The notes beneath the pieces are model-generated. The model was not told the origin of the DNA and searched no databases. It saw only the letters and a list, made by a program, of their open reading frames with translations. Of a stretch of 64,000 nt of DNA, positions 12,013 through 54,290 are shown one piece after another (position 1 is the first letter of the stretch; the number at the start of each line of letters is the position of its first letter). The stretch covers positions 186,001 to 250,000 of the forward strand of contig NW_027266276.1 in the NCBI RefSeq assembly GCF_022045235.1. The letters are read 5' to 3'. A program made the position numbers and the translations under genes. Source of the stretch: Haliotis cracherodii (Eukaryota).

Positions 12013-12850
12013 CTGGCGAACTATCCATAGCCAGGATGAAATCACCAACCGTGAATCCACTCCTGTTCCTCGCTCTGTCCACAGTCGTGCCCCTGCTTTT
12101 CCTTAAAGTTGCACGTTTACTGCTTATCTGTTTAGGTGTTCTACCATTAAGTTTCTTGGCAATGAGGGTGTTGATATGTTTACACCCATGGTAGACTTGC
12201 TCATACTTGTCAAGTATCATGACTTCACGACTCGTCCATTTTTGCTTCCGCGGGTCGGCCTCCTGACGAACACGTTTACGCCTGAATTTCTCCGCCGATC
12301 GACCTTCCTGCCGCTGCTTGTTCCTGAGTGCAGGGTGTCTATGCCTTGCGTGCTGTGATAGACCCGCTTTCGTGTAGAAGGTCATAGGACATGCACCGCA
12401 CTTATGCTCCCCAATCCTCCTGCTTGGCTTGGGTCCTCTGCACTTACCGTGATGGCATATGGTCCCATGAAGAGTGGAGAATCTCTTCTTGCAGGACCTA
12501 CATGTGAATTTCAATGGAAGACTGGGGTGCTTGCGCTCCCTGTGGGTCGTCATGGCTTTTGCGGCAAGAAAGGCCTCCTGGCAACAACAGACCGTGGGCT
12601 GGAAGGGGATGAGGATTTCTGCGAAATCGTCACAAATTTACATCGGTTGGAGAATATTTCCGCCAGCTCTCCCCTCGGGTCTTGAAACAGCGCGTGGACT
12701 TGTAGCCAACGGGATCTCATCCATTCCTTCAGTAGCGGCATTACGGTAATGTCCAGCTAGTCCGAGAAACAGCCCAACCAAAACCTATTCATGTCTCAGT
12801 GCACAGATTCCTTTTCAGTTCACTGGCCTTCTCCCTTTTCAGTTTGAAGT

Positions 12851-12891
<41 letters not shown>

Positions 12892-13037
12892 ATTGAATTT
12901 CTTCAGAAATCACAATGAAAGTAGTGGTATTTCAACTGCGTACATTGCTGCACTCCCACCTATGCTACACCTTTCATGTCGCTTCACAATGCCTAACTGA
13001 AGTCAAGCTCAACAGGGTCTTCTTTCCACGCCGAGGA

Positions 13038-13089
<52 letters not shown>

Positions 13090-13090
13090 T

Positions 13091-13139
<49 letters not shown>

Positions 13140-13148
13140 TTTTGGCTA
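12851..13148 (-). rRNA. 28S: Permuted 28S mini-cassette (downstream 237 bp fused to upstream ~60 bp of the R2 target)
   Basis: ttaagagagtcatagttactcccgccgtttacccgcgc (upstream flank) is joined through ...ttcttcagaaatcacaatgaaagtagtgg... to the downstream flank ending tttggcta. Confidence 0.95.
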
Positions 13149-16100
13149 TTAGTAGAAGAATCAGCGATAATTCTTATTGCGCCATCAGTTTGGAGGTGTC
13201 ACACCGTTCACCGTTACAGCTCAACTGTTGATCCCCACAGCTTCCCCATCTGGGTTGGATAACCTCTGATGGCTAACAGCCATTTCCAACTTCTGAGAAG
13301 GTTCTCTCTTGTCGGCTCGGCATTCCGACCCTTCTCTGCACAAGTGCAAGCTGGAGCGAGGTTCTCCATTAGTTCTGACAAGGTCATTACTAATATGAAA
13401 TTAACTGCCACGACAGTATGTTTCCCATATTGAGAGGCCATATGGTATAACATTAAAGAAATAGAGGTCCTACTAAGGGACGACATCTCTCGTGTGATGT
13501 CAAATGAGTGAATACTCCGAGCATCGCCTTGATGTCAGATTACTCTAACAGGCATAATGTTATTGACTAGCTGTGATCTGGAACCTGCTCCATTGGTATG
13601 AAACACAGAACGCAATTTAAATTTAATTATTTAATGCAGTTAAATACCTTTACCAATTAACACAATCTTGTTTTTGTACTTATGACTAACTAAAATACAT
13701 GTATGTCTTGTCTTGTCTATTTAGTACTGTCGTACTTCCGGATAACCCATACCTCTATATTAATGGTTATTACTTAGATTTATATTGTTATAACTCATAG
13801 TAGTTAAACACCATCACCGATACCAACACCAACTTATATACATAATCGTAATAATATTTTACGACTGCCTGTTTAGAGTATAATACAACGGATTTGATCA
13901 TTGCTAGAATGATCTATACATATATATATTAAAACACATGAAACACAACCATTCAGGAGTAAAAGTACTCGTAGCATGAAATATTAAAACTCTTGATTAT
14001 AATAAAATCGGTGCATATATGACAATATATGCGAAAAGAAAGACCTGCGTGAGGTGTAATCCCAGAAAAGTGAAAGAAAAATTGAAAAATTGTGGTATAA
14101 CTTGTTATATCCACTGAGTGGTATACCGCCGTATACCACTCTATTCCTGTTACAGGAATAAAAAAAATGGGATGTTACATAGTATTAGTATGCTTGATAC
14201 TAATCTATTTAATATTATACCGATAATATTATTAGAAAAATATATCTCTTCATGCTCATTGTGCTCTCGTGTCTTCTTCTCATATGCATCCGATCTGTAT
14301 GTGTTCCGGCAGTCCTCTTTCATCCACTCGCCAAGATGTAGGTGTGTTGGATCCTCATATACATGTCTCGCCTTATGTATATAGAGTGTACGCAGTACCT
14401 TATCTACTCGCCGTTAGACAATCGGCATCAAATCTGATGTAAATAACCATTTTATACATGTACATATAATGGTATAACGCAATATACCTATAGCTTATTC
14501 ACTCGCCGTCAGATAAGCCGGGCTATGCCCTATGCCATGCCGAACTCAGTAATGCGGCTGGTTATACCTATATATATATAGGTTTGCGTTGACCGGACGC
14601 TACGCTTCGAATCGGCTTATACTCATGGTATATTCCGATGTACCCAAGTGACAACAGCTGTATGAGAGATATTGTTGTACAAACGGAAATTATACAGCCG
14701 CCGTGTCGGCCAATAAAAACATAGTAATTGATATTTACAGAGTAATATGTACATATTTATATACTTGTAATATCTAATGATACCAAGCGCCAAGATCACA
14801 ATCTGTCTCATCAAGCTGTTAGCACTCATGTGTCCCTGTTCAGTGCCGAGTAGGATTCCATAGTGATTATGCGACGTTCACATGGTTCAATCCGAGATTG
14901 CCGTTTTCGATCCTCTTTACTGGTCCATGAATAGTCGCAGCAGTCTTATGGTATTGCACAGAGCCAGGAGACAAAAGTATTTGGCACTGTACCTCGGGAT
15001 GCCAAGGACCTCGAGCACCTTGTAGCATCGGGGCAACCAGCTACCCCTCGCTCCGAGAGGGAGGCCATAGACCTCGCACTGTGACGCCCCAGTTCTCTCC
15101 ATAACCGAAGGTACAAGTGGTCTGTATTTTCTCTCCTTTTCCTTGGCCGCCGCTACCAAGGCCCCCTTGTTTGGGTCCAATACGACCGTCACATCAACTA
15201 CTACTGCCTTCCCGTCTTTCACGCAGACTAGGTCGGGCTTGAAATAGGCATCCCCCAGACGTAGTCTGGGTTTGCACAATACTGCCCAACCTCGGAGCTT
15301 GGCAGCAGTTGATACGGCGGTGCATATCTTGTTATGTCTTTTGATTCGGCTCCGCTTGACAAAACCACAGTGTCCGCTGATGTGACCCAATGTTTCCGTA
15401 TGAAAACCACACCGCCTGCACTTCACATCACCTGTCGCTCGTCCCCGATGCAGCGCCTCCCTAGTGGGGTAGGTGTTGGTGCGCAGCTTTACAGCCAGTG
15501 AGTACTCGGACTCTGAGAGGGTCTCACCTTTTAACCACCAGTTGGCCGCTTTGTTGTCCCGTATCAATCTTGCTCCCAGCCCTTGGGCCGCATGGGCGTA
15601 CCAGGCCGTCCTTTGTGTGTTACGACACCAGTTTCGGGCCTTTCGGCCCTTGAGGTTTGTAGCACACTCCGGAAGCCCCCATTTGTCTACCAGCTGTTTA
15701 AGGTGCCCCCTAGCATTAATCTCTTCACTGATTGTCACAGCATCAGGTCACCAGAGTTTACTACCCGACTTTTCGACTGCACAATGCTACAGGGAACCAT
15801 GTACCGCAAACATGGTAGGCCCAAACCTCCATCTCTACTACTGGTGTAGAGAAAAGCAGTTGCAACCGATGGGTGAAGATGGAGCCACTCTATGACTTTC
15901 CCTCTCACTATGTTGTCCAAGTGATTGAGCGTCCCGCAAGCGGGCCCCACTGTCGCGAGAGAGTATTGGAGACGGGGAACCGCGTACTTGGTGAGGAGGC
16001 ACACTTTTTGGCGGGGTTTTAACGGCGCGCCGGATATACCTTTGCACCATTCGATCAGCAAATGAGACCAGGTCTTCCCTGTAGTCCCTACCCACGGGTC

Positions 16101-19100
16101 GATAAGAGCGCCGAGGTACTTGACTGATGTACCTGGATCAATCCATGGGATTTCGCCTTCATCGAGTACCGCCGCTACTTCCATGTTCACCGTGTACGTC
16201 TGTTTCCCGTCTTCGGGTGTGATAGTAAAGCAGTATGACTTCCGCACGTTTAGCTTTAGACCAGTATCCCGGCAAAACATCTCTACCAGGCCCAGGTTGG
16301 TTTGAAGTCCGTTTATGTCACCACTTGCAAGACCCGTATCATCGGCGTACCCCATTGCCGTGATCGCCATCCCCGAATCGAGATGGTATCCAGTTCCTCG
16401 TTCCTCTAGGAGACTGAATAGAGGGTCGATTGCCAAATTGAACAACAAAGGAGAGAGGGGATCTCCCTGCTTGATGCCTCTTTTGATCTGAATCAGGGAT
16501 GTCTGACCTTTAGGTGTCGTAAACCGAGTACTAGCGCCGGTGTACAAATCTTCTACTATTTCTAGCAGGCGATTATGCGCACCATGTCGCACCAGCCCGT
16601 TCCTCACATGTGAATGCGACACCGTATCAAACACTTTAGACAGATCTAGAAGGGCCACGGACAGTGCTCTTCCTTTCTTTTTCGCATGCTCAATCATGGA
16701 TGTCAGTAGTTGGATATTCTCTATGCAACCAGCTGCCTTAGTAAACCCGCGCTGTCTAGGATGCAGTGTGACTGCGTCTTGCAACCTGCTAGCTAGGACT
16801 TTCGTGTATAGTCGTACTACGACTGACGCAATGGTGAGTGGACGCCAGTTGCCTATGTTATTCGGCTCACCCCCTTTCGGCAGTAGTATGCTCCTATTCC
16901 GCTTGAGTTCATTAGGGATGGTTCCGGACAACAAGAAGCAGTTGCAAAGTGTCGCCATTACCCCCCCCCCCCCCCCCCCGTCCCCGTCTTGTCAAGCTTC
17001 TTTAAAGCACCCAGTCGTATACCATCCGGTCCCGCTGCAGTGTCAGCTTTCATCTTTGACATTGCGGAGAGTATTTCCCTCGGCTCAATTGGCTTCAATA
17101 TATTAGAGTTGTCAATCAACTTGCTGGGAACAGGGTAATCGGCCAGATTTACCCATCTGTCGCTACCCTCGAATCGTTCTTTATAGACTGTTTCGATTTC
17201 CCCAATGGTTACTGGACATGCAGTATCCAGTTTCCCATCAAGAATCTCTTATACCAGTCTAGATCGATCAAACGCTTGTTCCTAAGCGCGGGGTGTCTAT
17301 GCCTAGTGTGTTGTGCCAGACCCATTTTTGTGTAGAAGGTCATAGGACACACACCGCACTTATGCTCCCCAATCCTCCTGCTTGGCTTAGGTCTTCTGCA
17401 CTTACCGTGATGGCATATGGGCCCATGAAGAGTGGAGAATCTCTTCTTGCAGGACCTACATGTGAATTTCAATGGAAGACTGGGGTGCTTGCGCTCCATG
17501 TGGGTTGTCATGGCTTTTGCGGCAAGAAAGGCCTCCTGGCAACAACAGACCGTGGGCTGGAAGGGGATAAGGATTTCTGCGAAATCGTCACAGATTAGCA
17601 TCGGTTGAAGAATATTTCCGCCGGGTCTCTCCTCGGGTCTTGAAACAGCGCGTGGACTTGTAGCCAACGGGATCTCATCCAGTTCCTCGTTCCTCTAGGA
17701 GACTGAATAGAGGGTCGATTGCCAAATTGAACAACAAAGGAGAGAGGGGATCTCCCTGCTTGATGCCTCTTTTGATCTGAATCAGGGATGTCTGACCTTT
17801 AGGTGTCGTAAACCGAGTACTAGCGCCGGTGTACAAATCTTCTACTATTTCTAGCAGGCGATTATGCGCACCATGTCGCACCAGCCCGTTCCTCACATGT
17901 GAATGCGACACCGTATCAAACACTTTAGACAGATCTAGAAGGGCCACGGACAGTGCTCTTCCTTTCTTTTTCGCGTGCTCAATCATGGATGTCAGTAGTT
18001 GGATATTCTCTATGCAACCAGCTGCCTTAGTAAACCCGCGCTGTCTAGGATGCAGTGTGACTGCGTCTTGCAACCTGCTAGCTAGGACTTTCGTGTATAG
18101 TCGTACTACGACTGACGCAATGGTGAGTGGACGCCAGTTGCCTATGTTATTCGGCTCACCCCCTTTCGGCAGTAGTATGCTCCTATTCCGCTTGAGTTTG
18201 TTGGGGATGGTTCCGGACAACAAGAAGCAGTTGCAAAGTGTCGCCATTACCCCCCCCCCCCCCCCCCCCCGTCCCCGTCTTGTCAAGCTTCTTTAAAGCA
18301 CCCAGTCGTATACCATCCGGTCCCGCTGCAGTGTCAGCTTTCATCTTTGACATTGCGGAGAGTATTTCCCTCGGCTCAATTGGCTTCAATATATTAGAGT
18401 TGTCAATCAACTTGCTGGGAACAGGGTAATCGGCCAGATTTACCCATCTGTCGCTACCCTCGAATCGTTCTTTATAGACTGTTTCGATTTCCCCAATGGT
18501 TACTGGACATGCAGTATCCAGTTTCCCATCAAGAATCTCTTATACCAGTCTAGATCGATCAAACGCCCAGAGTTGTTGTACCCTTCTATACTCCGCCGCT
18601 TTACCCCGAGATCGGCCCCGCTTGGTTTTCCTGTGCCCGATGTTTTTTCTTTTCTTCCTTTGTTTTTCCGCCCTGTTCGTCATTCGCCCTAGCTGAACAA
18701 GCATGTCATCGTAATCCCCAACACAGGTAGGGCCATCCAAACAGTTTTGCAGCAGAGCTACAGCGCGGTTGCCATGTGGGTTATCAGACATCGTGTCTTT
18801 AACCTTCTCATAGTAAAGTCGGAATTGCTCCCTTCTTTGATCATCCGTTATCTCGCTAGGAGTCCCTTCGATCCCACCTTCGCCCGCTAGGGGTTCCGGT
18901 GAACTATCCATAGCCAGGCTGAAATCACCAACCGTGAATCCACTCCTGTTCCTCGTTCTGTCCACAGTCGTGCCCCTGCTTTTCCTTAAAGTTGCACGTT
19001 TACTGCTTATCTGTTTAGGTGTTCTACCATTAAGTTTCTTGGCAATGAGGGTGTTGATATGTTTACACCCATGGTAGACTTGCTCATACTTGTCAAGTAT

Positions 19101-20112
19101 CATGACTTCACGACTCGTCCATTTTTGCTTCCGCGGGTCGGCCTCCTGACGAACACGTTTACGCCTAAATTTCTCCGCCGATCGCCCTTCCTGCCGCTGC
19201 TTGTTCCTAAGCGCGGGGTGTCTATGCCTAGTGTGTTGTGCCAGACCCATTTTTGTGTAGAAGGTCATAGGACACACACCGCACTTATGCTCCCCAATCC
19301 TCCTGCTTGGCTTAGGTCTTCTGCACTTACCGTGATGGCATATGGGCCCATGAAGAGTGGAGAATCTCTTCTTGCAGGACCTACATGTGAATTTCAGTGG
19401 AAGACTGGGATGCTTGCGCTCCATGTGGGTCGTCATGGCTTTTGCGGCAAGAAAGGCCTCCTGGCAACAACAGACCGTGGGCTGGAAGGGGATAAGGATT
19501 TCTGCGAAATCGTCACAGATTAGCATCGGTTGGAGAATATTTCCGCCGGGTCTCTCCTCGGGTCTTGAAACAGCGCGTGGACTTGTAGCCAACGGGATCT
19601 CATTCATTCCTTCAGTAGCGGCATTACCCGCACCGTCAGTCTGTACTTCCCCCGAATGGCCTGGGTTTGGATCCCCCAGTCTTACGTCAGAGTACAACGG
19701 GAACCCTTGTTGTAAATGACGGCTCGGATAGCCAATTTTTCGAATTGTCACTCCGGCAGAGGACAAAACGGCAGCGTTTGACCCCCTCGCGGGGATCCGG
19801 CGCCTTGCATCCGTATTGCGACGATTTACGTTTGTATTCATCATGAGGTTATGGGATTTACATCCGTTAACATGAGGGAGGATTTAGCCTGACTCTCGCG
19901 AGTCAGCTGATAGCTCCACCGCGCAGAGGTACCTCCCAGTAGGACCGTGCCCCGGCGGATAACTCATGTTAGTCTACATATGCAGGGCTTTTCACGCGAA
20001 GAACTCGGTAATGTCCAGCTAGTCCGAGAAACAGCCCAACCAAAACCTATTCATGTCTCAGTGCACAGATTCCTTTTCAGTTCACTGGCCTTCTCCCTTT
20101 TCAGTTTGAAGT
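13149..20112 (-). mobile_element. R2 retrotransposon copy 2, full length with a 1.29-kb internal duplication; reconstructed about 5.7 kb, ORF about 1210 aa (19844 to 14917)
   Basis: Same termini as copy 1. ZF CCHH, CCHC, CCHH and Myb (KWTSREVMIL...RTPKQI) in 18540-19844. RT GIKQGDPLSP and YADD in 15735-16958. Endonuclease in 14917-15738. Stop at 18540, frameshifts at the poly-G tract and near 15737. Confidence 0.96.
19868..19971 (-). ncRNA. Candidate HDV-like ribozyme core in the R2 5' UTR
   Basis: Minus strand reads GGGAGG U ACC-UCUGCGC-GGU GGAGCUAUC AG CUGACUC-GCGA-GAGUCAG G CUAA AU CCUCCC, consistent with P2, P3/L3, P1', P4, J4/2 and P2'. The 5' strand of P1 was not identified. Confidence 0.6.
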
Positions 20113-20153
<41 letters not shown>

Positions 20154-20262
20154 ATTGAATTTCTTCAGAAATCACAATGAAAGTAGTGGTATTTCAATTG
20201 CGTACATTGCTGCACTCCCACCTATGCTACACCTTTCATGTCGCTTCACAATGCCTAACTGA

Positions 20263-20293
<31 letters not shown>

Positions 20294-20307
20294 CGAGGAT
20301 TCCAAGC
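20113..20307 (-). rRNA. 28S: Second copy of the permuted 28S mini-cassette, truncated on the downstream-flank side
   Basis: Same internal fusion junction as 12851-13148. It breaks after ttccaagc into diverged R2 3' UTR. Confidence 0.93.
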
Positions 20308-20637
20308 TGTCATTTCCAGCTTATAAGAAGGCTCTCATGTCGGGACGGCATTCCAACCCATTTTTGTATGAGCTCAAGTTGGAACAGTGTTTACCTATCA
20401 GGCAATGAATAAGTCATTTTCGGAAAAGAAATTCAACTGCCTCGACAGGATGTTTCCCATATTGAGAGAAAATATGGTGTAACATAAAAAAATAGAGTTT
20501 TTATTGAGGGATGACAACTCATTTGTTGTCTGAGTGAATAGTCTGTACATCCTTTGATGCCAGATTACTGTAATGGATAATATGTTATTGACAAGATGTG
20601 ATCCGGTTCCTTGTTCCACATGGTATAAAAGACAATA

Positions 20638-21674
20638 CAGTGGTCCCTCGTTATTGCGCTCTTCAATGTAGCGGTAAAGCATGGCTCCCAAAATTTAATA
20701 ACATTTTTAATAAACTCAACTTTTCCAATGACACAATGTTTTCCCCATCTCAGAAAACATTATCAGCTGATCACCTTGATCATGTAACACCGGAAATACC
20801 AGTCAACAAATCCATACTGAAGTACGCAATTTTATCCTATTATTATAATATCTGGTAATAAAAACATTGCTCATTGTTTATCTGGACTGGGTGTTTGCAA
20901 TATATTTTATTAATTATATTCAAAATTTCTTTCAATAATTATAATAATGTTTACAATAATTACGGCTAAATCGAATGCGAAGTGATTGGTAGATCACACA
21001 ACTCGCTGTTATTTAAAGCAACCAGATTACCGCTATTGACGCCTTGAAACAAACTTTAGTTGCAAGAGAATGGATACACATATCATAAATGCCGTACCAT
21101 GACTTGCTAAAGTCATATTTGAGGCAGTTTGAGCATTAAGTGTCAACATAACGATTTTGCAATTGAAAGACATGTAGCGCAGGAAGTCCCTACGGTGACT
21201 GGTCAAAATCGTTCCATATGTCAAAATATATCTGGCATACCATCTGTACCAAAGGGCAACGCTTATGGTTCTTATAATTTTAAGTATCTATGTTGGAAGC
21301 TGCAACTAAAAAACATGATATTGGAATATATTATTCCTGATAAAATAATAATTTCAGATACAATTTCTTCCGACCATATTGCATCCAAATTCTTTGAAGT
21401 TGTATCACTGGGTACGTTTTAACTGAATCACCGGTAGATTGGGAGGAAACGTGTGCACAGCTGATTGCTATTTCCGGCTTAGTTTACGAGAAAATACACA
21501 CGGTAATCTTAATCTCTGCATATAAAACAATGCCTTGGAAAGCAGGAAATACATTTTAAATGATCGTGACTTGTGTAGTTTTATTTCAATTTTCATACAT
21601 TTATTGAACAAATCATCTATAATGCTCATCAATTATTTGGACCCTGAAGGTAGCGTTGTAGCGAGGGATCACTG
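20638..21674. mobile_element. Tc1/mariner-type MITE
   Basis: TIRs cagtggtccctcg / cgagggatcactg with TA on both sides. No ORF. Confidence 0.85.
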
Positions 21675-22415
21675 TATGTACAACTGTTAACAGTTTATTG
21701 AGCATGTTTTATTTTCTCATGCTCTATTGTGTTTACATTATTATATTATGTGAGTTTGTTTACACGGAGTATTATTGTTATTATGGACATTAGCTTTTTT
21801 CGAGACTATGATTATATTAAAACTATGACCGCCACCAGCATGTATGTCGAGTCTTATTTGTTATGTTTCAATTTTCGTGGATGCAAACAAATGCAGATCC
21901 CCTCAATGATGGATAATTGAAAAACAAATATTTGTCAGTTACGGATGGATACAAATATAAATATATATAGATATATATATAAAAACCAACACCATGAAAA
22001 CTTTTAAGTATGTGCTTTTCAGAGATATATTCTGTTGTCTGCAAGCCCTTGGTGTTGGGCGGCGCCTTGGTATTATAAAATATGATGCGTTTGTTGCATG
22101 AATGAAAAGATATGGGGTATATTTTATATTAAAACTTGTAACAAAGCTGTATGAAGGAGTATATTACTCGAGACATATCATATTAGAATATCTTTGGAAA
22201 TTAAAATTGGTACATATATACATAGAACTATTCTTCAAACCTCCGTATGAGGCTATGCGAACTCCCCGACATTGAAAAATAATATAGAAAAATTGATATG
22301 TATATTTCTATACTACCATGCTGTCATATCACCATATGACAGCACTATTTCCCACGAGAAGGGAATACAAAATGGGAGAAAAATAATGATAATGAGATAT
22401 ATCTTAGTATTCAGT

Positions 22416-22749
22416 GGACCACCTCTGTGATCTAGTGGTAGAGTCCAGTAAGCGGAAGGTCCGGGGTTCAATCCCTGGCCGCATCATACGATTATACTTG
22501 TTGTTACCCTGTCTGGCACTCGGCATTAAGGGGCTAAAACAAGGACTGGTCGGCTCGGAGTCAGTATATTGTGTCTGAGTGGGGTATTCATATTAAACTG
22601 CGGCATGGTATCTCAGTGAGCTAGCACTATAATTGGCATAAGTCCGGACTAGTACAAGCAGCCACACACACAGATACATGTGCATGCACGTCGTTCTGTG
22701 AGTGCAATAATCTCTGACACAACTTTAAACCCCATTTCACCTCACCACC
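22416..22749 (+). mobile_element. tRNA-derived SINE with Meta/Deu(Nin)-like central domains
   Basis: A/B boxes; ctggcactcggcattaaggg...gactggtcggctcggagtcagtata...cagtgagctagcactataa. Imperfect TSD tagtattcagtg / tagtattctgcg. A reverse fragment lies at about 36950-37085. Confidence 0.8.
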
Positions 22750-23689
22750 TAGTATTCTGCGATAATATTCGTGATATAGTTCTTGTACCGATTCCAATCT
22801 GTAAGAGGTAGTCAATCTCTTGATCAATCATAGGCTTGTTGCAGACCTTCATTGTGGTGTCCCCTTCTTGAGAGCATCCCAGTTCCATCCTGTCAACTGT
22901 ACCCTCTGGTAGAGCGATGTCTTTGTTCATCTAACTCGCCAAGATGTGTTTCAGGTTAGTGGTTGTTTCATTCCAATCCATTCTACAAAAGTAATATGCC
23001 TTGTATAGAGGAATAGATTCTTAGGTATAATGCAATAATACCTTCTGTTTATTTACTCGCCGGAAATAAACAGGGGATACGCCCTAAAGTACTGTCGGAA
23101 ATGCTAGAAAACTGCTTTTTGCCTGTTAAACAAAGATATAATTTTCCAAAAACTGTTATTGAAATATCGAGAATCTACCAATCGCCCTACCTGTGGTTTG
23201 AAGTATTTCAGTCACAAGGAGTCCTATCGACAAGTTTACAGGAGACAAATTCGACCGAAGTTCACATTAATTCTAAGTCCAATGATGGCAATCTGAAACA
23301 GACTATAGAAATATGTGCACGTGACTGCGTTATAATGATTATTATGTAGTCTTCATAAAACAACTAATCCACACACAAAAACATTTTGAGAAAATTCTAC
23401 ATGTGCATCTTCTAAATGACAAAATGATGCTGTGTTTGGTTTGTTAACCTTGTTCCTATGAGGCATGTTACATTACACTTGCATACCCATAACCATGGTA
23501 CACGATCTGGAGTCTGTACTTGGAAATGTATACAAGTTCTTTACACTTTAGAGAGATAGAGGGAAACCATTTATTAATTTAGATAGGGGGAATTACCAAA
23601 CTGCCCAAGTCTTCAATTCATACCATCAAGTCTACTGTATGATAAGGAAACTAGACAGTAAAGGGGTGGTCTCAAAAACAAAACCGGGA

Positions 23690-23995
23690 CATAAAAGGAT
23701 ATTAGACAGCTTTGATACGGGGTGATTAGGCATATAGTGTAAAGCTTTATGAGCAGAAGGTAACCCTGACTTGTAGTAGAATTTGGGAGGAATTAAAGAT
23801 ACAATTAATGTTCCCAGACTGCACTAACTATTGCTTTTCAAGAGATGGGATTTCAATACACTGCCCGTGGCGATGGCCAAACACTTTTCACGGGAAAATA
23901 CTCCATCCTGTCTATGAGGTCACATTATCTCCGAACCAATTAATAACTGCCACAGTCAGGGCATCCAGATAATTTACCTTGATGAATCATTCGAC
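23690..23995 (+). pseudogene. IS630-Tc1-mariner (Sailor-like) transposase fragment
   Basis: KMGFQY, RSHYLR and IIYLDES-like motifs in broken frames. Confidence 0.45.
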
Positions 23996-24007
23996 TGACT
24001 ACATGTA

Positions 24008-25424
24008 TACTGAACAACAAAAGTTCCTGTGATATTGAATAAGATTTAATGCAAAGTTATGATTTTTTACCAAATCTGAAACAATTTCGGTTTGCAACAG
24101 ATAAAAGACTCCTGTAAGTGTTCAAATGGTTTAATTTGCCATACTGACTTCAGCAAATGTGTGATTTCCTAAAAAAACATGAACATGCCAAAATGTCAAT
24201 TTACAAATCAATAGCGTGTGTGTCCACCTCTGGTTGCGATGCAAGCAACACATCTTCGTCTCATGGAATGGACCAGGCGTCGCACAAAGTCCTCTTGGAT
24301 ATCTGTCCATATCTGCTGGAGCATGTCTCATCCCACACGTGCTCGATTGGTGAGAGATCAGAAGAGCAAGCCGGCCAGGGGATGACATTCACGTTTTGTT
24401 GAAGAGAATCCTGAACAAGTCGAGCAATAAGGGGCCGGGCATTGTCATGTTGAAAGGTAATGCCTGGGCCATGACGATGCAAAAACAGTAGAACAACGGC
24501 AAAAATGGATGATCTCATCGCGGTAGCGCTGTCCATTGAGATTACCCTCTACCACTATCAAACAGGTCCTCTGTCTTGCTGTAATCCCACCCCATACCAT
24601 AACACTGCCGCCCCCGGACCGATCTTCTTCCATGACACAATGATTGACGTAACGTTCACCTCGATGTCGGTACACTCAAAGCCGTCCATCGCTGTGCCTG
24701 AGGGGAAAACTCGTCAGTGAAAAGAACTTGTCCCCACTGCATGGCCGTTCAGCATAGACGCTGTCTGCACCACTGTAGACGTGCTTGAAGGTGGTTTCCT
24801 GTCAAAATGGAATGCCTGGTGGGTCTTCTGGCGACAATCCCTGAATATCTGAGGCGACGACGTACGGTTTGTGAAGATATTCGTCGAAGGCAAGGGATGC
24901 TTCTTGCAGTCACTGTTGCTGGCTGGAATCGATTTTGTAGGTGTGTTGTTTTAATCCAGTTGTCTTGTCGATTATTGGTTACGCTTGGTCTGCCACTCCG
25001 AGGATGGTCTCTGACTGCATTCGTCTGTTGCCAACGTTGCCATAAACACCAAATGGTGTTTCTGTGGACATTAAATTGTCTTGCAACATCGATCCTGCTT
25101 CAAGCATGCCAATGGCTCGCAGACTCTCATTTTCGGACAGGCATGGCATTTCGTAATGTTGAATAATTGCGTAATTTTGTCATTTGTCTGAGTGTTTGTT
25201 GTCAGCACAATGCTAAACAATGCATATGGAATCCCATTCTTGGGCAGTGAAATGTATGGGGCTTGCATAAAAGTCAACTTTTGCATGGAATGCATGCTTT
25301 TTCTGTAGCAGTTGCGTTTTTGTGACTTGATTCCATACATGTACTACAATATTGAAAACCAAACTTTACTTGTTTGAAAAATACACTAAAATATTGGTGT
25401 CACAGGAACTTTTGCTGTTGAGTT
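24008..25424 (-). mobile_element. Tc1 DNA transposon with degenerate transposase
   Basis: TIRs tactgaacaacaaaagttcctgtga / tcacaggaacttttgctgttgagtt with TA flanks. Motifs GGGSVMVWGGI, FQHDNARP, WPACSSDLSPIEHVWD. Confidence 0.9.
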
Positions 25425-27844
25425 TATATCTATCTATATCTATCTCTATCTATACATATACATATATAACAAAGTATGAGTTATCTAGAATAACTGTCAT
25501 AAAATAATCTTCCGATTATCTGTACAATATTTCAGTGTTACCAAGATGACGATCTGTCTCATATTGCCGATACAACTCACAAGTCCCTGTTCAGTTCCGA
25601 GAAAGATTCCAAAATGAAGATGCTGCGTTCATTTGGTTCAATTTGGGATCAACGTCTTCGATCTTCCTTACTGGTCCATTAACAATCGTCAGAGCCTTAT
25701 TGAGTTGCGCAGAGTCAAGAGACAAAAGTACTTGGTACTATACCTTTGGATGCCATGGACCTCGCGTACCTTGTAGCATCTGAGCAACCAGCTACCTCTC
25801 GCCATAGATCTCGCACTGTGACGCTCCTGTTCTTTCAAGTACTGATGGTATGAATGGCAAATATTTTTTCACCTTTTCCTTAGTCGCCGCATCTAAGGCC
25901 CCCTTATTAGGGTCCCATAGGACCCTCACATCTCTTACCGAGTCTGGGTTCAGACAATACTGCCCAGCCATGGAGCTCGGCAGCGGTCGGTACGGCTGTG
26001 CATATCTTGTTGTGTTATTTGATTCAGCTCCGTTTGCCCACTGACATGTCCAAGCGTCTCTGTATGAAAACCACACTGCCTGCACTTCACATCAGCTGTC
26101 GCATGTCCCCAATGCAGCGTCTCCCTAGTGGGTTAGGTGTTGGTGAACAGCTTAATAGCCAGTGAGTACTCGGACTTGGAAAGGGTCTCCCCCTGTAACC
26201 ACCAGTTCGATGCTTTATTGTTCCTCTGTAGACATGTGCCTAGCCCTTGGACTGAATAGGCGTACCAGGCCATCCTTTGTTTGTTACAACACCAGTTTCG
26301 GACTTGATGGCCCTTGAGTTTTGCAGCGCACTCAGGAAGCCCCCATTTATCTACCAGTCGTATAAGGCACTCCTCCGCAATGATCTCTTCATTGATTGTA
26401 TGCAACAGATCTTTAGAGTAAATAACCTGACTTTTTGATTGCACAATGCTAAATGGAACCATGTACCAAAGACAAGGGAGACCTAATCCTCCGTCTCTAC
26501 TACAGGTGTAAAGAAAAGCCGATGCAACTGTTGGATGAAGGTGACTTTATTTTTCACAATGTTGTCCAAGCGATCGAGCAACACATAAGCAGGTGGGTGT
26601 CTCGTGTCCCAGTGTCGCGAGAGAATATTGGAGACGGGTAATCACGTACTTGGTGAGGAGGCACACTTTTTGGCCGGGTTTAAGCGGCACTCCGGATATG
26701 CCTTTGCACCATTTGATCAGCGAATGGGTCTAGGTCTTCCTGTGGTCCCTACCCACAGATCTACACCAGCGCCAAGGTACTCATAATATCTCAGAGTTGC
26801 CAATCAACTTGCCGGGAACAGGGTAACCAGTAAGATCAACTGCAAGGGTGCAAGCAGTGTTAATCTGCTTACACCCTTGGTAGACTACCTCATACTTGTC
26901 TAGTATCATGGCTTCACGACTTTTCCATTTTTGTGTCCGGGGGACAGCCACCTGACGAACCCATTTTCTTCTAAATTTCTCTGCTATTCTGCCTTCCTTT
27001 GGAATGTGACATGGCCATGACCTTAAACTAAAACCTCCTAAATATCCCACGCTCATACACTCGTTACTCCCACACTGCCCACACAGCTTGCTCACACTCT
27101 CATCATCTCTCATACAGCTTCCATATTTCCGCCACTATCGTACTCCTAGTTCCTATCTATAATCTATTACCTAGGCATACATAATAAACATGATAGGACA
27201 CATTCAATCGAAATATAATTGTACCAATGCTGCTACGCAACTGAACAAGTTCACTTGTAACTGTAGCAATTATTTCAACACATTTACAATTCAAGTATAT
27301 ACCCCTGTTCACTTCTTTTGAACCACAGTCTACCTCAAGATGTTACGCATGTCATCGATCCCAATTGCGTGGATCGATGCTCATGATATCAATCACTGGA
27401 TTGTCTGGTCCAGATTCGATTACTTACAGACCACCGTCATATAGCTGGAATATTGCTGAGTTCAACAACAAACAAACAAACAATCATACATACATATAAG
27501 CCTGTCACAAAGCCGGCTCTTTCTGATGGTGAGCAGCCCTTACACCTTGAGTGCCCCGAGCTACGCCCTCACATCACTTGACCATGAGCTGCATCCAAAC
27601 GTCTTGCTACGAGTCCCGTGCCAGTCCAAGCTACGAGTCCCGGACACTACACAACCAAAGACACATTACTAACAGTGTCTGATACCATTCCTATAACAAC
27701 CAAGAATGGGTTTACACACATAATGGAGTAACTTACATATGGTAAGCTGACATTGTTTTACTCAAACAAGTTTTTCAACATGCAGAGAGTATAATATCCA
27801 GCTTAAACCTACGCCAATGACGAGGTTATTTACATACAAATGTG

Positions 27845-40033: not shown

Positions 40034-42189
40034 CTGGTTGTATTTCACACTCTTTAAGGCTCAGTAATATGTTGTTTAACAACGCACTCAGCAATATTCC
40101 ATTTATATGGCGGCGGTCTGTAAATAATTTAATCTGGACCAGACAATCCAGTGATTGATATTATCAGCATTGAGATACAATGACAGGCATCAAACTAGTC
40201 AGCGAGTCTGACCACCTGATCCCTTAGTGGCCTCTTACAACAAGCATGTTTGTTTCTGCTGTTTGCCTTCATTTTAGCCTTTGTGAATTGTTTTGAAACA
40301 GATCATTCATGTCATTGGTCAAGGTCATCTCCTTCAACTTAGTTTACCGGAAACATAAAACTGGGAAAACATATCCTGAAGTTCATTTAAGCTGTAAAGC
40401 TCTGACGTGTATCAACCGCTACATATTTTCAAGGTCAAAGGGAAGGCTATTTGCTATTTGCTATTTTTATCTGTTTTGCCTTTTCAAGAAATTTCTGTTG
40501 TAAATCTTTGTGACCTACTGCCAATGATAATGCCATATTTGTCATTCCATCTATTCCGTCATTGGACCATCTTCCCATTGCAAGGGTGTTAACTGACTAA
40601 AAGTCCAGTTTCCACGTTTGCCGAACTAGACTGGAAATTCCAGGCTTGATCGTAGCACCACCAGAGGCATTTACGAGTAATGTCCCTTCTACGTCCCTCC
40701 TCCTGACCTGTTAGATTCCATTGGTTATATCGCGTGTATTTGCTTCAAACAAAATGACAAGCCCCCCGTGAAAACGATCTGATTGATAATCAAGATCTAT
40801 ATTGTAATAAAACAGGTTTTACCCTGCGGAGTGCATCAAATCACTTGAGCATCTTAATTAAAAACATAAAAAAAATTGTGAAATATCTGTCAGTGCCAAG
40901 TTGAAGGTACAAATACTTTGCAAATCCTGCAGTCGACTGAAATCCATGTTGTTTAGTTTGTAATACGATTTCGTTAGTCCAGCAAAACTGTAACTCAAGA
41001 AGTGTGGAAACACAACTTTATAGTCAGTTAACTCCCTTTCCTTGGGAAGATGTCGGTGGACAACATGATTGGTTAATATAATGTACACATGGATGAAAAT
41101 TAATATAAAAAACGCAAGTCCAAGTCTATTATGATTCTGGAAGGACCAGTGACATTTCCTTGTGTAGTACCTCTTTTATCATTGACTAGATGGCACTCCG
41201 TAGCAGATCAGTTTTGCAGACAAATGAAGATAGAAATTATTTTCTAACACTGATATGGCCCTAGCCACCATAGGATCTATTCACCATGTGTGTTGACGTT
41301 CATCCATTAAAAGCTGTGCATCATTTTAGCTGATTGAGGTTGTCATAATGACATTGTCATCTATTGACTATTTTGGGTGCTGTAAGGTTTGAAGAATTTG
41401 ACAACCGCTGCCACTGCCACACAGTTTTTAAGACAGGGTGCATGGCTGAGGAATCATCTCACAGAGGTGTTTCTTTAATGTCTGGTCAGATATCTGTGCA
41501 ATCCTGTTTGGGATGCTTTTGTACACCTTTGCAGCAAATGATGAAGCTGTATAAAGGGGTCATGGGCAGGCATTGTATCATATGTGGGGTTGTCCTGACA
41601 AGGTTCTGTCATCTGATGTACCAATTGCTGGTGGTGCCAATAACAATGTCTTGAGGCTGTGCTCTGTGGAACATACTTTTGTAGGCCTAATCATGATGTT
41701 TCTCATGCAGCATGTGGTTCCCATGTGCTTTTACTTTCTGTATTGTTGGTTTTATGATGTTTCTATTCATTTAACTGATTTCATTTTGATGATTCCAGCA
41801 ATGCCAATATTAACTTTGTACCAAATGACATCTTATTCATGCTAATTATTTCATATGAGTATGTCAGCATCACCAATGTTTTTCGGTTTTTGTATGATTT
41901 CAACGTAGGTATATCAAGTGATGGCATTCTTATAATAAACAGTGGCAGGTCATGGGGATGGTCTTTCAAGCAGCAGAAAATGATATATTTTCAATGTTCA
42001 GTTGAATTCTACCAGAGGTTCATTCAACATATGGTACTTGAGACCATATGGTATTCGTGAAAATCTCGTTACTCATAATGAAGTGTAATACCCTGTTCCT
42101 TTCTAGCTTCTGGTGAAATTGCATATGGTAGCATTGATAGCAGTATAAGGACGTTTGGCCTGACATAACAATATGGACTGATGGCTAAA

Positions 42190-44341
42190 AGTTATCTTGG
42201 CCTGAAACAAGAACAAATGTTGATGTTGCATACAGGGTGAATGTAGTAGTCCTGGGAGAGTTGAGATGCCATAGTAAAGATGTTGGGGTCAACTTCTCTG
42301 GCACAATATGCTCCCAGTTTGTCGGAGAAGACACACATATTATGAGCTAACAAAGCACGATTACTTGTTCTGCTGGGCATACAGGGTGAATGTAGCAGTC
42401 CTGGGCGAGTTGTGATGGCAGTGTTTGGATGTCGGGCCCGACAACAATTTGACGTCTTGGCTGATGATGACTCAAATGGTCTGAAGCAAGTCAAAATGAT
42501 GATGTTGCATACAGGGTGAATGTAGTAGCACTGGGAGAGTTGTGATGGCAGTGTTTGGATGTCGGGCCCGACAACAATTTGACATCTTGGCTGATGATGA
42601 CTCAAATGGTCTGAAGCAAGTCAAAATGATGATGTTGCATACAGGGTGAATGTAGTAGCACTGGGAGAGTTGTGATGGCAGTGTTTGGATGTCGGGCCCG
42701 ATGAAACAATTTGACGTCTTGACAGATGATGACTCAAATGGTCTGAAGCAAGTCAAAATGATGATGTTGCATACAGGGTGAATGCAGTAGCACTGGGAGA
42801 GTTGTGATGGCAGTGTTTGGATGTCGGCCCGACGAAACAATTTGACGTCTTGACAGATGATGACTCAAATGGTCTGAAGCAAGTCAAAATGATGATGTTG
42901 CATACAGGGTGAATGTAGTAGTCCTGGGAGAGTTGAGATGCCATAGTAAAGATGTTGGGGTCAACCTCTCTGGCACAATATGCTCCCAGTTTGTCGGAGA
43001 AGACACACATATTATGAGCTAACAAAGCACGATTACTTGTTCTGCTGGGCATACAGGGTGAATGTAGTAGTCCTGGGAGAGTTGAGATGCCATAGTAAAG
43101 ATGTTGGGGTCAACCTCTCTGGAACAATATGCTCCCAGTTTGTCGGAGAAGACACACATATTATGAGCTAACAAAGCATGATAACTTGTTCTGCTGGGCA
43201 TACAGGGTGAATGTAGCAGTCCTGGGAGAGTTGAGATGCCAAAGTATAGATGTTGGGCCCAACCAAATAGCATACAGGATGAATGTAGTAGCCCTAGAAG
43301 AGGCCTAACAATTTGACATCTTTGCTGATGATGTGAAAGGCGAGTTGGCCGAAAAAAGACAAAATGATGATATTGCATACAGGGTGAATGCAGTAGCACT
43401 GGGCAAGTTGTGATGGCAGTGTGTGGATGTCGGGCCCGATGAAACAATTTGACGTCTTGACAGATGATGACTCAAATGGCCTGAAGCAAGTCAAAATGAT
43501 GATGTTGCATACAGGGTGAATGCAGTAGCACGGGGCGAGTTGTGATGGCAGTGTTTGGATGTCGGGCCCGACAACAATTTGACGTCTTGACAGATGATGA
43601 CTCAAATGGTCTGAAGCAAGTCAAAATGATGATGTTGCATACAGGGTGAATGTAGTAGTCCTGGGAGAGTTGAGATGCCATAGTAAAGATGTTGGGGTCA
43701 ACTTCTCTGGCACAATATGCTCCCAGTTTGTCGGAGAAGACACACATATTATGAGCTAACAAAGCACGATTACTTGTTCTGCTGGGCATACAGGGTGAAT
43801 GTAGCAGTCTTGGCGCGTTGTGATGGCAGTGTTTGGATGTCGGGCCCGACAACAATTTGACGTCTTGGCTGATGATGACTCAAATGGTCTGAAGCAAGAC
43901 AAAATGATGATTTTGCATACAGGGTGAATGCAGTAGCACTGGGCGAGTTGTGATGGCAGTGTTTGGATGTTGGGCCCGACAACAATTTGACGTCTTTGCT
44001 GATGATGACTCAAATGGTCTGAAGCAAGTCAAAATGATGATGTTGCATACAGGGTGAATGCAGTAGCACTGGGAGAGTTGTGATGGCAGTGTTTGGATGT
44101 CGGGCCCGACAACAATTTGACGTCTTGGCTGATGATGACTCAAATGGTCTGAAGCAAGACAAAATGATGATGTCGCATACAGGGTGAATGCAGTAGCACT
44201 GGGAGAGTTGTGATGGCAGTGTTTGGATGTCGGGCCCGACGAAACAATTTTGATGTCTTGGCTGATGATGACTCAAATGGTCTGAAGCAAGACAAAATGA
44301 TGATGTTGCATACAGGGTGAATGCAGTAGCACTGGGAGAGT
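42190..44341. repeat. Satellite subfamily A, about 130-bp unit, with four 149-bp-type units carrying captured Gypsy RT sequence
   Basis: Period 130-132 (42421, 42551, 42681). Palindrome tgtcgggcccgaca in most units. Confidence 0.95.
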
Positions 44342-44849
44342 TGCGATGGTTGTGTACTGACACAGAGGGTGACAAAAAGAGCTGGATGATGTTGCACATT
44401 AGATGAAGGCAGTGTCACCTAGCTGTAGGAATGTGCCTCTTGTTCACTCTGAAGATTCTGTGGGCTTGCCCAGACCGCTTGCCCCTTAAGGCGACCACTG
44501 GGAATAACGAGCACTGTGCTCGGACCGAATTCAGCTGGCAACCAACACTCTCATGACGTGACTGGACAGTGAGCTTCCTTCCTGTTGTATGAGGTAGAAA
44601 TGGTACATCGATAGACTGAGCAAGCGATTTGAACACAAGCCACAATTCTCCATGGTCAGCTCGAGCAGTGGCTCTTGTGTTTAAACTTGTTTTTCTTGCA
44701 AAGTTCTTGAACATTCGAGAGATCGACTGGGTTCGTTTTGTCAGACTGGCGATTAGACATGCAGTCAGAGTGACTTGACAGATGGGTAGCGGTGGCAGTG
44801 ACAAATAATTGTCACTGCGAACCCAATCGAGAGGCAATGTGATGTGCAT

Positions 44850-53700: not shown

Positions 53701-54290
53701 GTGCAGTAGCCCTGGGAGAGAGGTAATAGCAGTGTTTGGATGCCAGCCCAACGAAACAAATAATGTTTTGGCTGATGATGACTCAAGTGGTCTGAGGCAA
53801 GACAAAATGATGATTTTACATACAGGGTGAATGCAGTAGCCCTGGGAGAGATGTGGTGGCAGTGTTTGGATGTTGGGCCGGACAAATCATTTGCAGTCTT
53901 GGCTGATGATGACTCAAATGGCCTGAAGGAAGTAGATATAGGGGTGTAGTTTGCTGCTCAAATGTTCAAAGTAATAGCTCAAGTTTAACATTTGGCACAT
54001 GTTGAAATGTAGGGATGCCTGATCTGGTTCAAAGGCGAGTTGGCCTGAAGTATATATACATTAATATAAATTGAAACAAGTGTTTATAGAGTTGTCCTTA
54101 AGAGAGTTGTGGTTTCAGTGTACTGATGGTCTGACAAAGTAAGCAGTAGCCCTGGGACAGTTGTGATTGGAGTTTATGTATGTCGGGTCTGACTAAACAA
54201 TATCTAAAGGCGAGTTGACCTTCAGCAACAAAAATTAATAATGTTGAATGCAGGTTGAATTAAGTTGCCCCAGGAGAGTTCTGAGGAAGC
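47800..54290. repeat. Satellite subfamily B, 141-bp unit, about 40 copies, decaying at both ends
   Basis: Unit gatgttgggcccaacagaacaatttgatgtctcggctgatgatggctaaaggcgagttggcttgaagcaagac... with higher-order blocks (e.g. 49900-50300 resembles 50880-51260). Confidence 0.97.

Follow-up and report, generated by a model that had tools for sequence, protein, structure and literature searches.

Permuted 28S segments between decayed R2 retrotransposons at an rDNA-adjacent locus of Haliotis cracherodii

Background

Three R2 retrotransposons lie head to tail in a 64,000-nucleotide stretch of the Haliotis cracherodii genome (contig C13, positions 186001-250000; this whole stretch is called the window below), and between them stand short pieces of the 28S rRNA gene in which downstream sequence comes before upstream sequence. 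How did such permuted 28S segments come to separate retrotransposons? A reading of the window from its letters alone (the sequence-only reading) took them to be part of the mobile unit. The permuted segment, or cassette, would be carried as a 5' extension of the R2 RNA, and its insertion would rebuild the target TTAAGG|TAGCC, giving a self-renewing landing pad and head-to-tail arrays.

We compared the window with the whole assembly (1.18 Gb in 80 contigs), taking as canonical 28S reference an assembled rDNA unit of the same genome (L042; unit of about 9.6 kb). The reading that we favour, at a probability of roughly 60%, is that the junction inside the cassette arose once and was spread by local exchange and by segmental duplication, in an array that is now decaying beside the rDNA.

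Results

Layout of the array and identity of its elements

The canonical 28S sequence round the R2 site reads ...AATGTGATTTCTG, then 24 nt, then AAGAAATTC...CTCTTAAGG|TAGCC.... All R2 and 28S parts of the window lie on the minus strand and are described here in the R2 sense, with 28S positions counted from the R2 site. The order is c3, cassette 2, c2, cassette 1, c1, a block of 28S +1 to +237 and a decayed 28S remnant, which agrees with the succession of copies, cassettes and 28S flank proposed in the sequence-only reading. The features are the following:

20311-26984, minus strand: R2 copy c3, divergent, heavily decayed and 5'-truncated
20113-20307, minus strand: cassette 2, with the two-step junction and its 55 nt of upstream 28S, the downstream block being reduced to +104 to +237
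13149-20112, minus strand: R2 copy c2, with its ORF interrupted and about 1.29 kb duplicated internally on C13 only
12851-13148, minus strand: cassette 1, 298 bp of permuted 28S
4653-12850, minus strand: R2 copy c1, an A-clade R2 with a broken ORF
8842-12014, plus strand: LTR retrotransposon fragment (Ty3/gypsy-type) inside c1, with RVT_1, RT_RNaseH, Integrase_H2C2 and rve domains
4416-4652, minus strand: 28S +1 to +237 flank block directly 3' of c1, 98.3% identical to canonical rDNA
4001-4415, minus strand: remnant of old, decayed 28S at the array end, from about +238 to +662 relative to the R2 site, with an Rfam match

The Rfam match (LSU_rRNA_eukarya) covers 4001-4531. In the reading that we favour, the three dead R2 copies would form a relic head-to-tail array on an orphan 28S fragment, about 175 kb from the rDNA array at the chromosome end. 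Elsewhere in the window there are two long satellite arrays (42180-44350 and 47880-53930) with a strong G-over-C skew of 0.27-0.35; their self-matches suggest a period of about 130-138 bp, and they resemble each other at about 78-80%.

Comparison with the genome's own rDNA defines the ends of the elements. Their 3' junctions read ...CTACTAA|TAGCC and their 5' junctions ...CTCTTAA|ACTTC with the GG of the target lost; that of c1 reads ...CTCTTAA|ACTTCAAACTG. The elements thus sit in the sense orientation at the 28S site TTAAGG|TAGCC, the position that characterizes R2. Pieces of the ORFs match solved vertebrate R2 proteins such as R2Tg (E-values of about 1e-98 and 1e-31) and, more weakly, the Bombyx R2 protein (3e-51). 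Three C2H2-type motifs are seen in the R2 translation, and the Pfam RVT_1 match to the R2 ORF is weak. Judged by these matches, the elements are A-clade-like R2s, in agreement with the R2 plan of one ORF that runs from N-terminal zinc fingers and Myb through a reverse transcriptase to a C-terminal restriction-like endonuclease. An Rfam search of 19300-20320 for a 5' HDV-like ribozyme matched no ribozyme family at E <= 10, R2 ribozymes being poorly covered by the models.

Stops and frameshifts are present in every R2 copy. On C13, c1 bears the gypsy-type LTR fragment as well as a 379-bp deletion near its 5' end, neither of which is found in its paralog on contig C11 (see below). The internal duplication of c2 (about 1.29 kb; 16388-17275 and 17677-18566, rearranged), of which the two copies are 99.3% identical, is likewise missing from the C11 paralog. 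Since C11 has none of these three changes, they are recent and specific to C13. Copy c3, at the 5' end of the array, is the most decayed. It can be aligned with c1 only in patches, at 73-82% nucleotide and 59-81% amino-acid identity (67% over the longest stretch, of 236 aa), and it has suffered large internal deletions of the ORF and gained about 4.9 kb of foreign DNA in the 3' UTR. Copy c3 is a divergent lineage. No 28S sequence was found upstream of c3.

Anatomy of the cassettes

In cassette 1, positions 13148-12912 correspond to 28S +1 to +237. Through a TGT overlap the block passes into 8 nt of upstream 28S, GATTTCTG, after which 24 nt of 28S are skipped at a TG overlap. The remaining 55 nt (12905-12851) are upstream 28S, 100% identical to the rDNA, and end in TTAA, the GG of the target being absent. 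Set against canonical rDNA, the structure is exactly that given in the sequence-only reading: 237 bp of downstream 28S, TGT and about 60 bp of upstream 28S, with a skip of about 24 nt at TG. Its count of two differences between 12912-13148 and 4416-4652 is also exact, and direct comparison bears out the identity of the two 106-bp stretches of R2 5' end that adjoin the cassettes (12745-12850 and 20007-20112).

The 23-mer junction motif occurs in the window at 12899 and 20161 only. The recurrence of the two-step junction at 20161 had been part of the earlier proposal; the motif is indeed there, but the second cassette is not full length, retaining only +104 to +237. It differs from cassette 1 at two positions in 195 bp and meets c3 by a non-homologous join, of c3 position 5523 to 28S +104, which also takes away the final 132 bp of c3. 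Cassette 2 is found in the same truncated form on C11 and on contig C2. Overall the cassettes are 98-100% identical to canonical 28S.

An origin of the 24-nt gap by skipping of a hairpin was considered and rejected. A 6-nt inverted repeat does flank the gap, but its bases pair elsewhere in the conserved 28S fold and the stem is not formed in a single-sequence fold. As the skipped 24 nt are not a loop in the conserved fold, the skip carries no RNA-specific signature.

The junction is confined to one locus and its segmental duplicates

The sequence-only reading called for a genome search that should find the junction at many loci. A whole-genome search with the cassette and the R2 5' end gave five instances at three loci, of which two are in the window, two at C11:20.344-20.351 Mb and one at C2:0.159 Mb. 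The corresponding arrays occupy C11:20.344-20.356 Mb and C2:0.153-0.160 Mb, and each of the three array loci is within about 150-190 kb of a contig end that carries 28S. The flanks of the C11 and C2 arrays are 97-99% identical to those of the window over kilobases on both sides, and the three loci are therefore segmental duplicates rather than independent insertions. The junction is thus restricted to the C13 locus and its duplicates on C11 and C2.

The shared segment extends over at least about 29 kb, at 97-99% identity, on the three rDNA-adjacent chromosome ends (window 1-29379, C11:20.335-20.365 Mb and C2:0.145-0.175 Mb), and is mirrored in orientation on C11. It looks like an rDNA-flanking segmental duplication and resembles the junction regions of nucleolar-organiser chromosomes.

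The C2 array has a shorter order: c3, cassette 2, c2 and then directly the flank, with no c1. Since the c2 of C2 is nearest to that of C11 (99.4%), and c1 is kept on both C13 and C11, c1 was lost on C2. The arrangement left is exactly the product expected from recombination between the two 237-bp blocks.

Misassembly had been named in the sequence-only reading as a finding that would overturn it. The region is repetitive and near the rDNA, so that a chimeric join could be suspected, but the five assembled instances at three loci bear private substitutions, and read-derived contigs from four runs contain three sampled 31-mers that cover the junction; all four runs belong to one study, probably that which produced the assembly. 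We consider an assembly artefact scarcely credible. Contigs from further runs of this species lacked the same three 31-mers, though this does not prove them absent there, and no other species has them.

Other R2 copies have ordinary 5' flanks and the rDNA units are empty

If the cassette were part of the mobile unit, it might be expected with R2 copies elsewhere. A dispersed copy at C13:4.1 Mb (L037) has 148 nt of contiguous upstream 28S, including the 24 nt skipped in the cassette, followed by a TTAA|ACTTC 5' junction; its downstream 28S amounts to TAGCCA only. In another, on contig C5 (L039), upstream 28S runs uninterrupted for about 130 nt, and about 49 nt of downstream 28S follow the element. 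Both lack the junction and have ordinary upstream 28S at their 5' ends, against the claim that the cassette moves with R2. A junction confined to one duplicated locus, together with R2 copies of ordinary flank elsewhere, had been named in the sequence-only reading as the outcome that would overturn it, and this is largely what we observe.

These two copies (L037:3781-8917, at C13:4.1 Mb, and L039:2314-7411, at C5:7.04 Mb) belong to different R2 lineages and form discrete modules in non-rDNA DNA. In both, the 28S leader starts at about -150, and the 28S tails measure 6 nt and about 49 nt. The common start suggests that R2 RNA in this genome carries a long, defined 28S leader. As each consists of a 28S leader, R2 and a short 28S tail, copies derived from co-transcripts integrate ectopically here.

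The junction had also been expected inside true rDNA units. In 13 of the 13 units assembled (the rDNA arrays being under-assembled), upstream and downstream 28S are 3 nt apart, and so their R2 sites are empty. Uninserted 28S genes lie at C23:76.72-76.75 Mb, C12:82.35 Mb, C10:29.30-29.32 Mb, C75, C13:15 kb and C11:20.50 Mb. Every R2 copy found is degenerate and outside these 13 units; in this genome R2 seems to have died out, or almost so.

Read depth gives a similar picture. Reads were mapped to c2 only, over 13149-16380, beside cassette 1. Two independent Illumina samples, at about 1.6x genome coverage, yielded 22 and 71 reads on c2 at 90% likeness or more, or depths of about 1x and 3.3x. In contigs of the source run the depth is about 8.5 on the c2-specific 3' UTR and 40-75 on the conserved ORF. 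This fits about 5-9 ORF copies, in line with the roughly eight copies of the assembly, and a further R2 population of high copy number is absent, as far as reads of low coverage show. Junction words are missing from all runs on record as RNA; a single putative RNA run yielded no contigs on c2, a weak piece of evidence.

Two kinds of short 28S fragment were met in these searches. In the canonical rDNA unit (L042:1775-1892; C23:76732001-76742000), two tandem 71-bp repeats lie in the intergenic spacer just past 28S, and each holds 28S -47 to +2, the upstream half of the R2 target site, with CTCTTAAGGTA or CTCTTAAGATA at its end. In addition, short diverged fragments of about +1 to +95 are scattered in unrelated DNA: L024 (C23:4.31 Mb), L025 (C80:6.27 Mb), L026 (C56:20.9 Mb), L027 (C4:4.62 Mb) and about 15 more. 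We considered whether the latter might be tails of R2 insertions, and rejected this as no R2 precedes them.

Independence of c1 and c2 within a diversified family

The ORFs of c1 and c2 differ at 25, 34 and 69 first, second and third codon positions, respectively (NG86 dN/dS 0.24), so that the changes are many and largely silent, as had been noticed from the sequence. The codon-position pattern equals that of either copy against the dispersed copies L037 or L040, and the third-position excess is larger than in true paralog pairs (Fisher p 0.046), as independent active ancestors would also give. In the mid 3' UTR the divergence between c1 and c2 rises to 22-23%, far above that of the ORFs, which again upholds the sequence-only reading. 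The 3' UTR tree groups c1 with L037 and c2 with L040, both with 100/100 support. No inactivating lesion is common to c1 and c2. The codon pattern, the 3' UTR divergence and the trees show c1 and c2 to be independent members of a diversified R2 family and not in-situ duplicates, which bears out the sequence-only reading on this point. A simple tandem duplication of one unit of R2 plus cassette was accordingly rejected, c1 and c2 being neither sisters nor sharers of an inactivating lesion.

The mid 3' UTR (13149-14900 and 4653-6380) is hypervariable among all R2 copies, at 10-30% pairwise against about 4-5% in the ORFs. In the tree of the 5' region, L037 groups with c2. Such conflict between trees from different parts of the element indicates recombinant R2 lineages.

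The independence of c1 and c2 would also be expected if an array of 28S mini-fragments had come first, with tandem units of about 301 bp (55 + 8 nt of upstream 28S, an intact site and 237 bp of downstream 28S) into which different R2 lineages were then inserted independently by normal target-primed reverse transcription. Such an array would account for the identical spacer junctions and for the precise, species-typical TTAA|ACTTC and CTAA|TAGCC junctions of both c1 and c2, the same as in L037, and short 28S fragments including target-site halves are duplicated elsewhere, for instance in the intergenic spacer. Against it, neither an empty mini-fragment nor an unoccupied junction exists anywhere in the assembly, and it leaves unexplained both the abutment of c3 on +104 and the boundary in the flank described below. 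We regard this history as improbable.

The array does not show the signs of serial reinsertion

The geometry of a self-renewing landing pad works on paper, and precedents exist for its parts: 5' additions can become fixed in an R2 subfamily, as did a U12 snRNA segment in D. ambigua (PMC3414825), and R1 tandem arrays arise by reinsertion into a regenerated target (PMC2718515). However, the array itself speaks against it. The intact site TTAAGGTAGCC is absent from the window and from 30 kb of each paralog, so that no TTAAGG|TAGCC is left in the array to serve as a landing pad. Serial reinsertion predicts the youngest copy at the 5' end; the most decayed copy, c3, is found there, in contradiction of this prediction, and no upstream 28S precedes the array. 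Nor did the cassette diverge in step with the element, as a mobile part of it should: the two cassettes differ at 2 of 195 positions and remain 98-100% canonical, whereas the R2 bodies, with c1 and c2 not sisters, are 4-25% apart. With the restriction of the junction to paralogous loci, the ordinary flanks of L037 and L039, the empty rDNA sites and low R2 depth and, weakly, the putative RNA run with no contigs on c2, these observations make a mobile cassette highly improbable.

Gene conversion and a sharp boundary between young and old sequence

Divergence between c1 and c2 is uneven. Three patches of near-identity stand out against 4-23% outside them:

28S +104, via the cassette junction, to about R2 position 280: 0.4% divergence
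R2 1301-1830: 1.9% divergence
R2 2461-2920: 0.4% divergence

Besides these, the final 113 bp of R2 with the 237-bp block are nearly the same at the end of c2 with cassette 1 as at the end of c1 with the flank. As there are several such patches, the stretch of identity over the cassette and its 106 bp of R2 is just another of these conversion tracts and reveals no special property of the cassette. In the patch at R2 2461-2920, the c2 of the window has private differences that are missing from the c2 of C11, and thus conversion went on after the loci had separated. Together with the loss of c1 on C2, the near-identity patches show active gene conversion and unequal exchange.

The flank 3' of c1 is composed of segments of different age. 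Comparison with canonical 28S in the three paralogs gives:

+1 to +212: 0 of 212 positions with substitutions common to the three paralogs
+213 to +246: 2 substitutions common to the three paralogs (+213 and +235), both also in the cassettes
+247 to +662: 41 of 356 aligned positions substituted alike in the three paralogs, and 60 positions deleted

The first and the last of these segments differ strongly (Fisher p 2.6e-9), and the boundary, at about +213 to +246, coincides with the end of the cassette. The 63 nt of upstream 28S in the cassette show no difference from canonical. Hence the 28S parts of the cassettes, like about +1 to +212 of the flank, still had the canonical sequence shortly before the segmental duplication. 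The flank beyond the boundary and c3 are much older.

Two histories fit the boundary, neither of which requires a mobile cassette. Conversion by 28S and R2 copies of the rDNA may have replaced the inner parts of an old array of mini-units, with the 237-bp and 55-nt blocks as arms and old alleles left only at the outer edge. Alternatively, a young block may have been patched into an old relic of c3 and 28S; this block would have been concatenated cDNA of co-transcripts or a piece of an array that stood in the rDNA. The sequence-only reading had offered, as its own alternative, a homology-driven placement of R2 with 28S beside an older R2; this is compatible with the young/old boundary.

The patching could even have been a single event of reverse transcription. 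A break in the old c3-28S relic would have been repaired by copying R2/28S co-transcripts: the 28S tail of an RNA anneals to the old downstream 28S and primes in register, c1 and its 28S leader are copied, the enzyme switches at a microhomology to another co-transcript (c2), landing on its 28S tail, and then jumps once more, and the far end is joined non-homologously inside c3, the junctions being made identical by later conversion. Such an event would explain why the boundary at about +213 to +246 is in register and falls at the end of the cassette, why the left end is non-homologous (c3 position 5523 to 28S +104), and why the block is built from different R2 lineages. It is also in line with the modular, ectopic L037 and L039 in non-rDNA DNA and with the template jumps of the R2 reverse transcriptase in vitro and in vivo (PMC3414825, PMC3774820). 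Yet it demands about 12 kb of continuous cDNA with two jumps and still needs later conversion for the identical two-step junction; the 24-nt skip is no hairpin loop in the conserved 28S fold, and template switching at the DNA level leaves identical scars. On balance we hold this course of events to be unlikely.

Discussion

The origin that we favour for the permuted 28S spacer is a rearrangement scar that arose once. Its TGT and TG overlaps would fit a polymerase template switch, made either by the R2 reverse transcriptase jumping between R2/28S co-transcripts or by microhomology-mediated DNA repair between neighbouring R2-occupied 28S genes; the RNA and the DNA route seem to us about equally probable. 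The scar would then have spread locally by unequal exchange and gene conversion among the repeated 28S/R2 segments of the array, not by retrotransposition, and rDNA-resident copies of 28S and R2 probably also took part in these exchanges. Segmental duplication of the rDNA-adjacent region would have carried it between the chromosomes of C13, C11 and C2. The single origin of the junction, the directions of conversion and the polymerase responsible are what we infer from these patterns.

Some observations sit less easily with this single-origin scar. As c1 and c2 are independent insertions, duplication of one unit could not give two identical cassettes, and conversion that copied the junction across a spacer would have been needed. 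A junction of the same age as the flank (11.5% diverged) should also show some old alleles at the outer edge of the 63 nt, and none are there. The juxtaposition of canonical +1 to +212 with old sequence from +247 onward would likewise call for homology-limited conversion or for insertion of a young block, which counts against our explanation.

The spacers may instead have acted as a passive capture site, at which the 28S arms (237 bp and 55 nt), or a 28S tail annealed at a break, repeatedly brought copies of different rDNA-resident R2 variants, or of their co-transcript cDNAs, into the relic outside the rDNA. In that case the array would preserve a record of R2 lineages, assembled by reverse-transcriptase template jumping or homology-driven capture and not by normal site-specific insertion. 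We hold this proposal to be unlikely.

The closest known system is found in Drosophila. The tandem-like R1 arrays of D. melanogaster have one identical junction of downstream and then upstream 28S, which was read as an amplified unique event (Stage & Eickbush 2009, PMC2718515); in these insertion site rearrangement (ISR) junctions, a duplication of downstream 28S is followed by an upstream 28S tag (PMC2718515). As in the abalone locus, a spacer of downstream and then upstream 28S stands between successive rDNA-specific elements, with the same junction in each. The element here is R2 instead of R1, though, and the spacer pieces are longer (237 + 63 bp, against up to 17 bp and 16-27 bp in the R1 ISR). 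The elements of the R1 ISR arrays are copies of one, while those of our array are independent lineages. Amplification of a unique unit, as in R1, is thus matched by the identical spacer junction and not by the elements, which are not copies of each other.

R1 also forms tandem arrays by reinsertion into its 14-bp target-site duplication (PMC2718515). These too are head-to-tail arrays of 28S-specific elements with 28S between the copies, and for R1 the regenerated target explains the serial insertion. In contrast to our array, the R1 spacer is the duplication only, and the arrays lie in real rDNA with upstream 28S at the head; here the head has neither an intact site nor upstream 28S, and the copy at the 5' end is the oldest.

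For R2 itself, variant 5' junctions are known with upstream-28S leaders, tandem duplications of 13-28 nt and template jumps to U12 snRNA or tRNA (PMC3774820, PMC3414825). They resemble the present case in having upstream 28S at the R2 5' end and microhomology joins typical of template switching, and they set a precedent for extra 5' sequence joining a subfamily. The known R2 28S leaders are at most 36 nt long (PMC3774820, PMC3414825), and none of the studies consulted reports downstream 28S at the 5' end of an R2. In our case, unlike theirs, the extra sequence was not propagated past one duplicated locus. Non-rDNA R2 relics have been characterized as incomplete, diverged, outside functional 28S genes and unable to seed an active population (PMC2718515). 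The copies studied here are likewise incomplete and diverged, but they stand in a fixed order with conserved spacers between them, and the array is present in triplicate, on three chromosome ends. Our literature search found no description of R2 arrays with spacers of downstream and then upstream 28S, which is not proof that none exists, and tandem R2 arrays are not described in a recent pan-animal R2 survey. In the reading that we favour, the array is an R2 counterpart of the relic R1 arrays in Drosophila heterochromatin.

If the cassette were mobile after all, R2 would renew its own target, and models of R2 persistence in rDNA would change. As it stands, the array shows that rDNA-adjacent regions gather and shuffle dead R elements, and it offers a clean natural case in which adjacent retroelement copies are marked by gene conversion tracts. 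Three chromosome ends are seen exchanging rDNA-flanking sequence, and the sharp boundary between young and old sequence may record RNA-templated or homology-limited repair.
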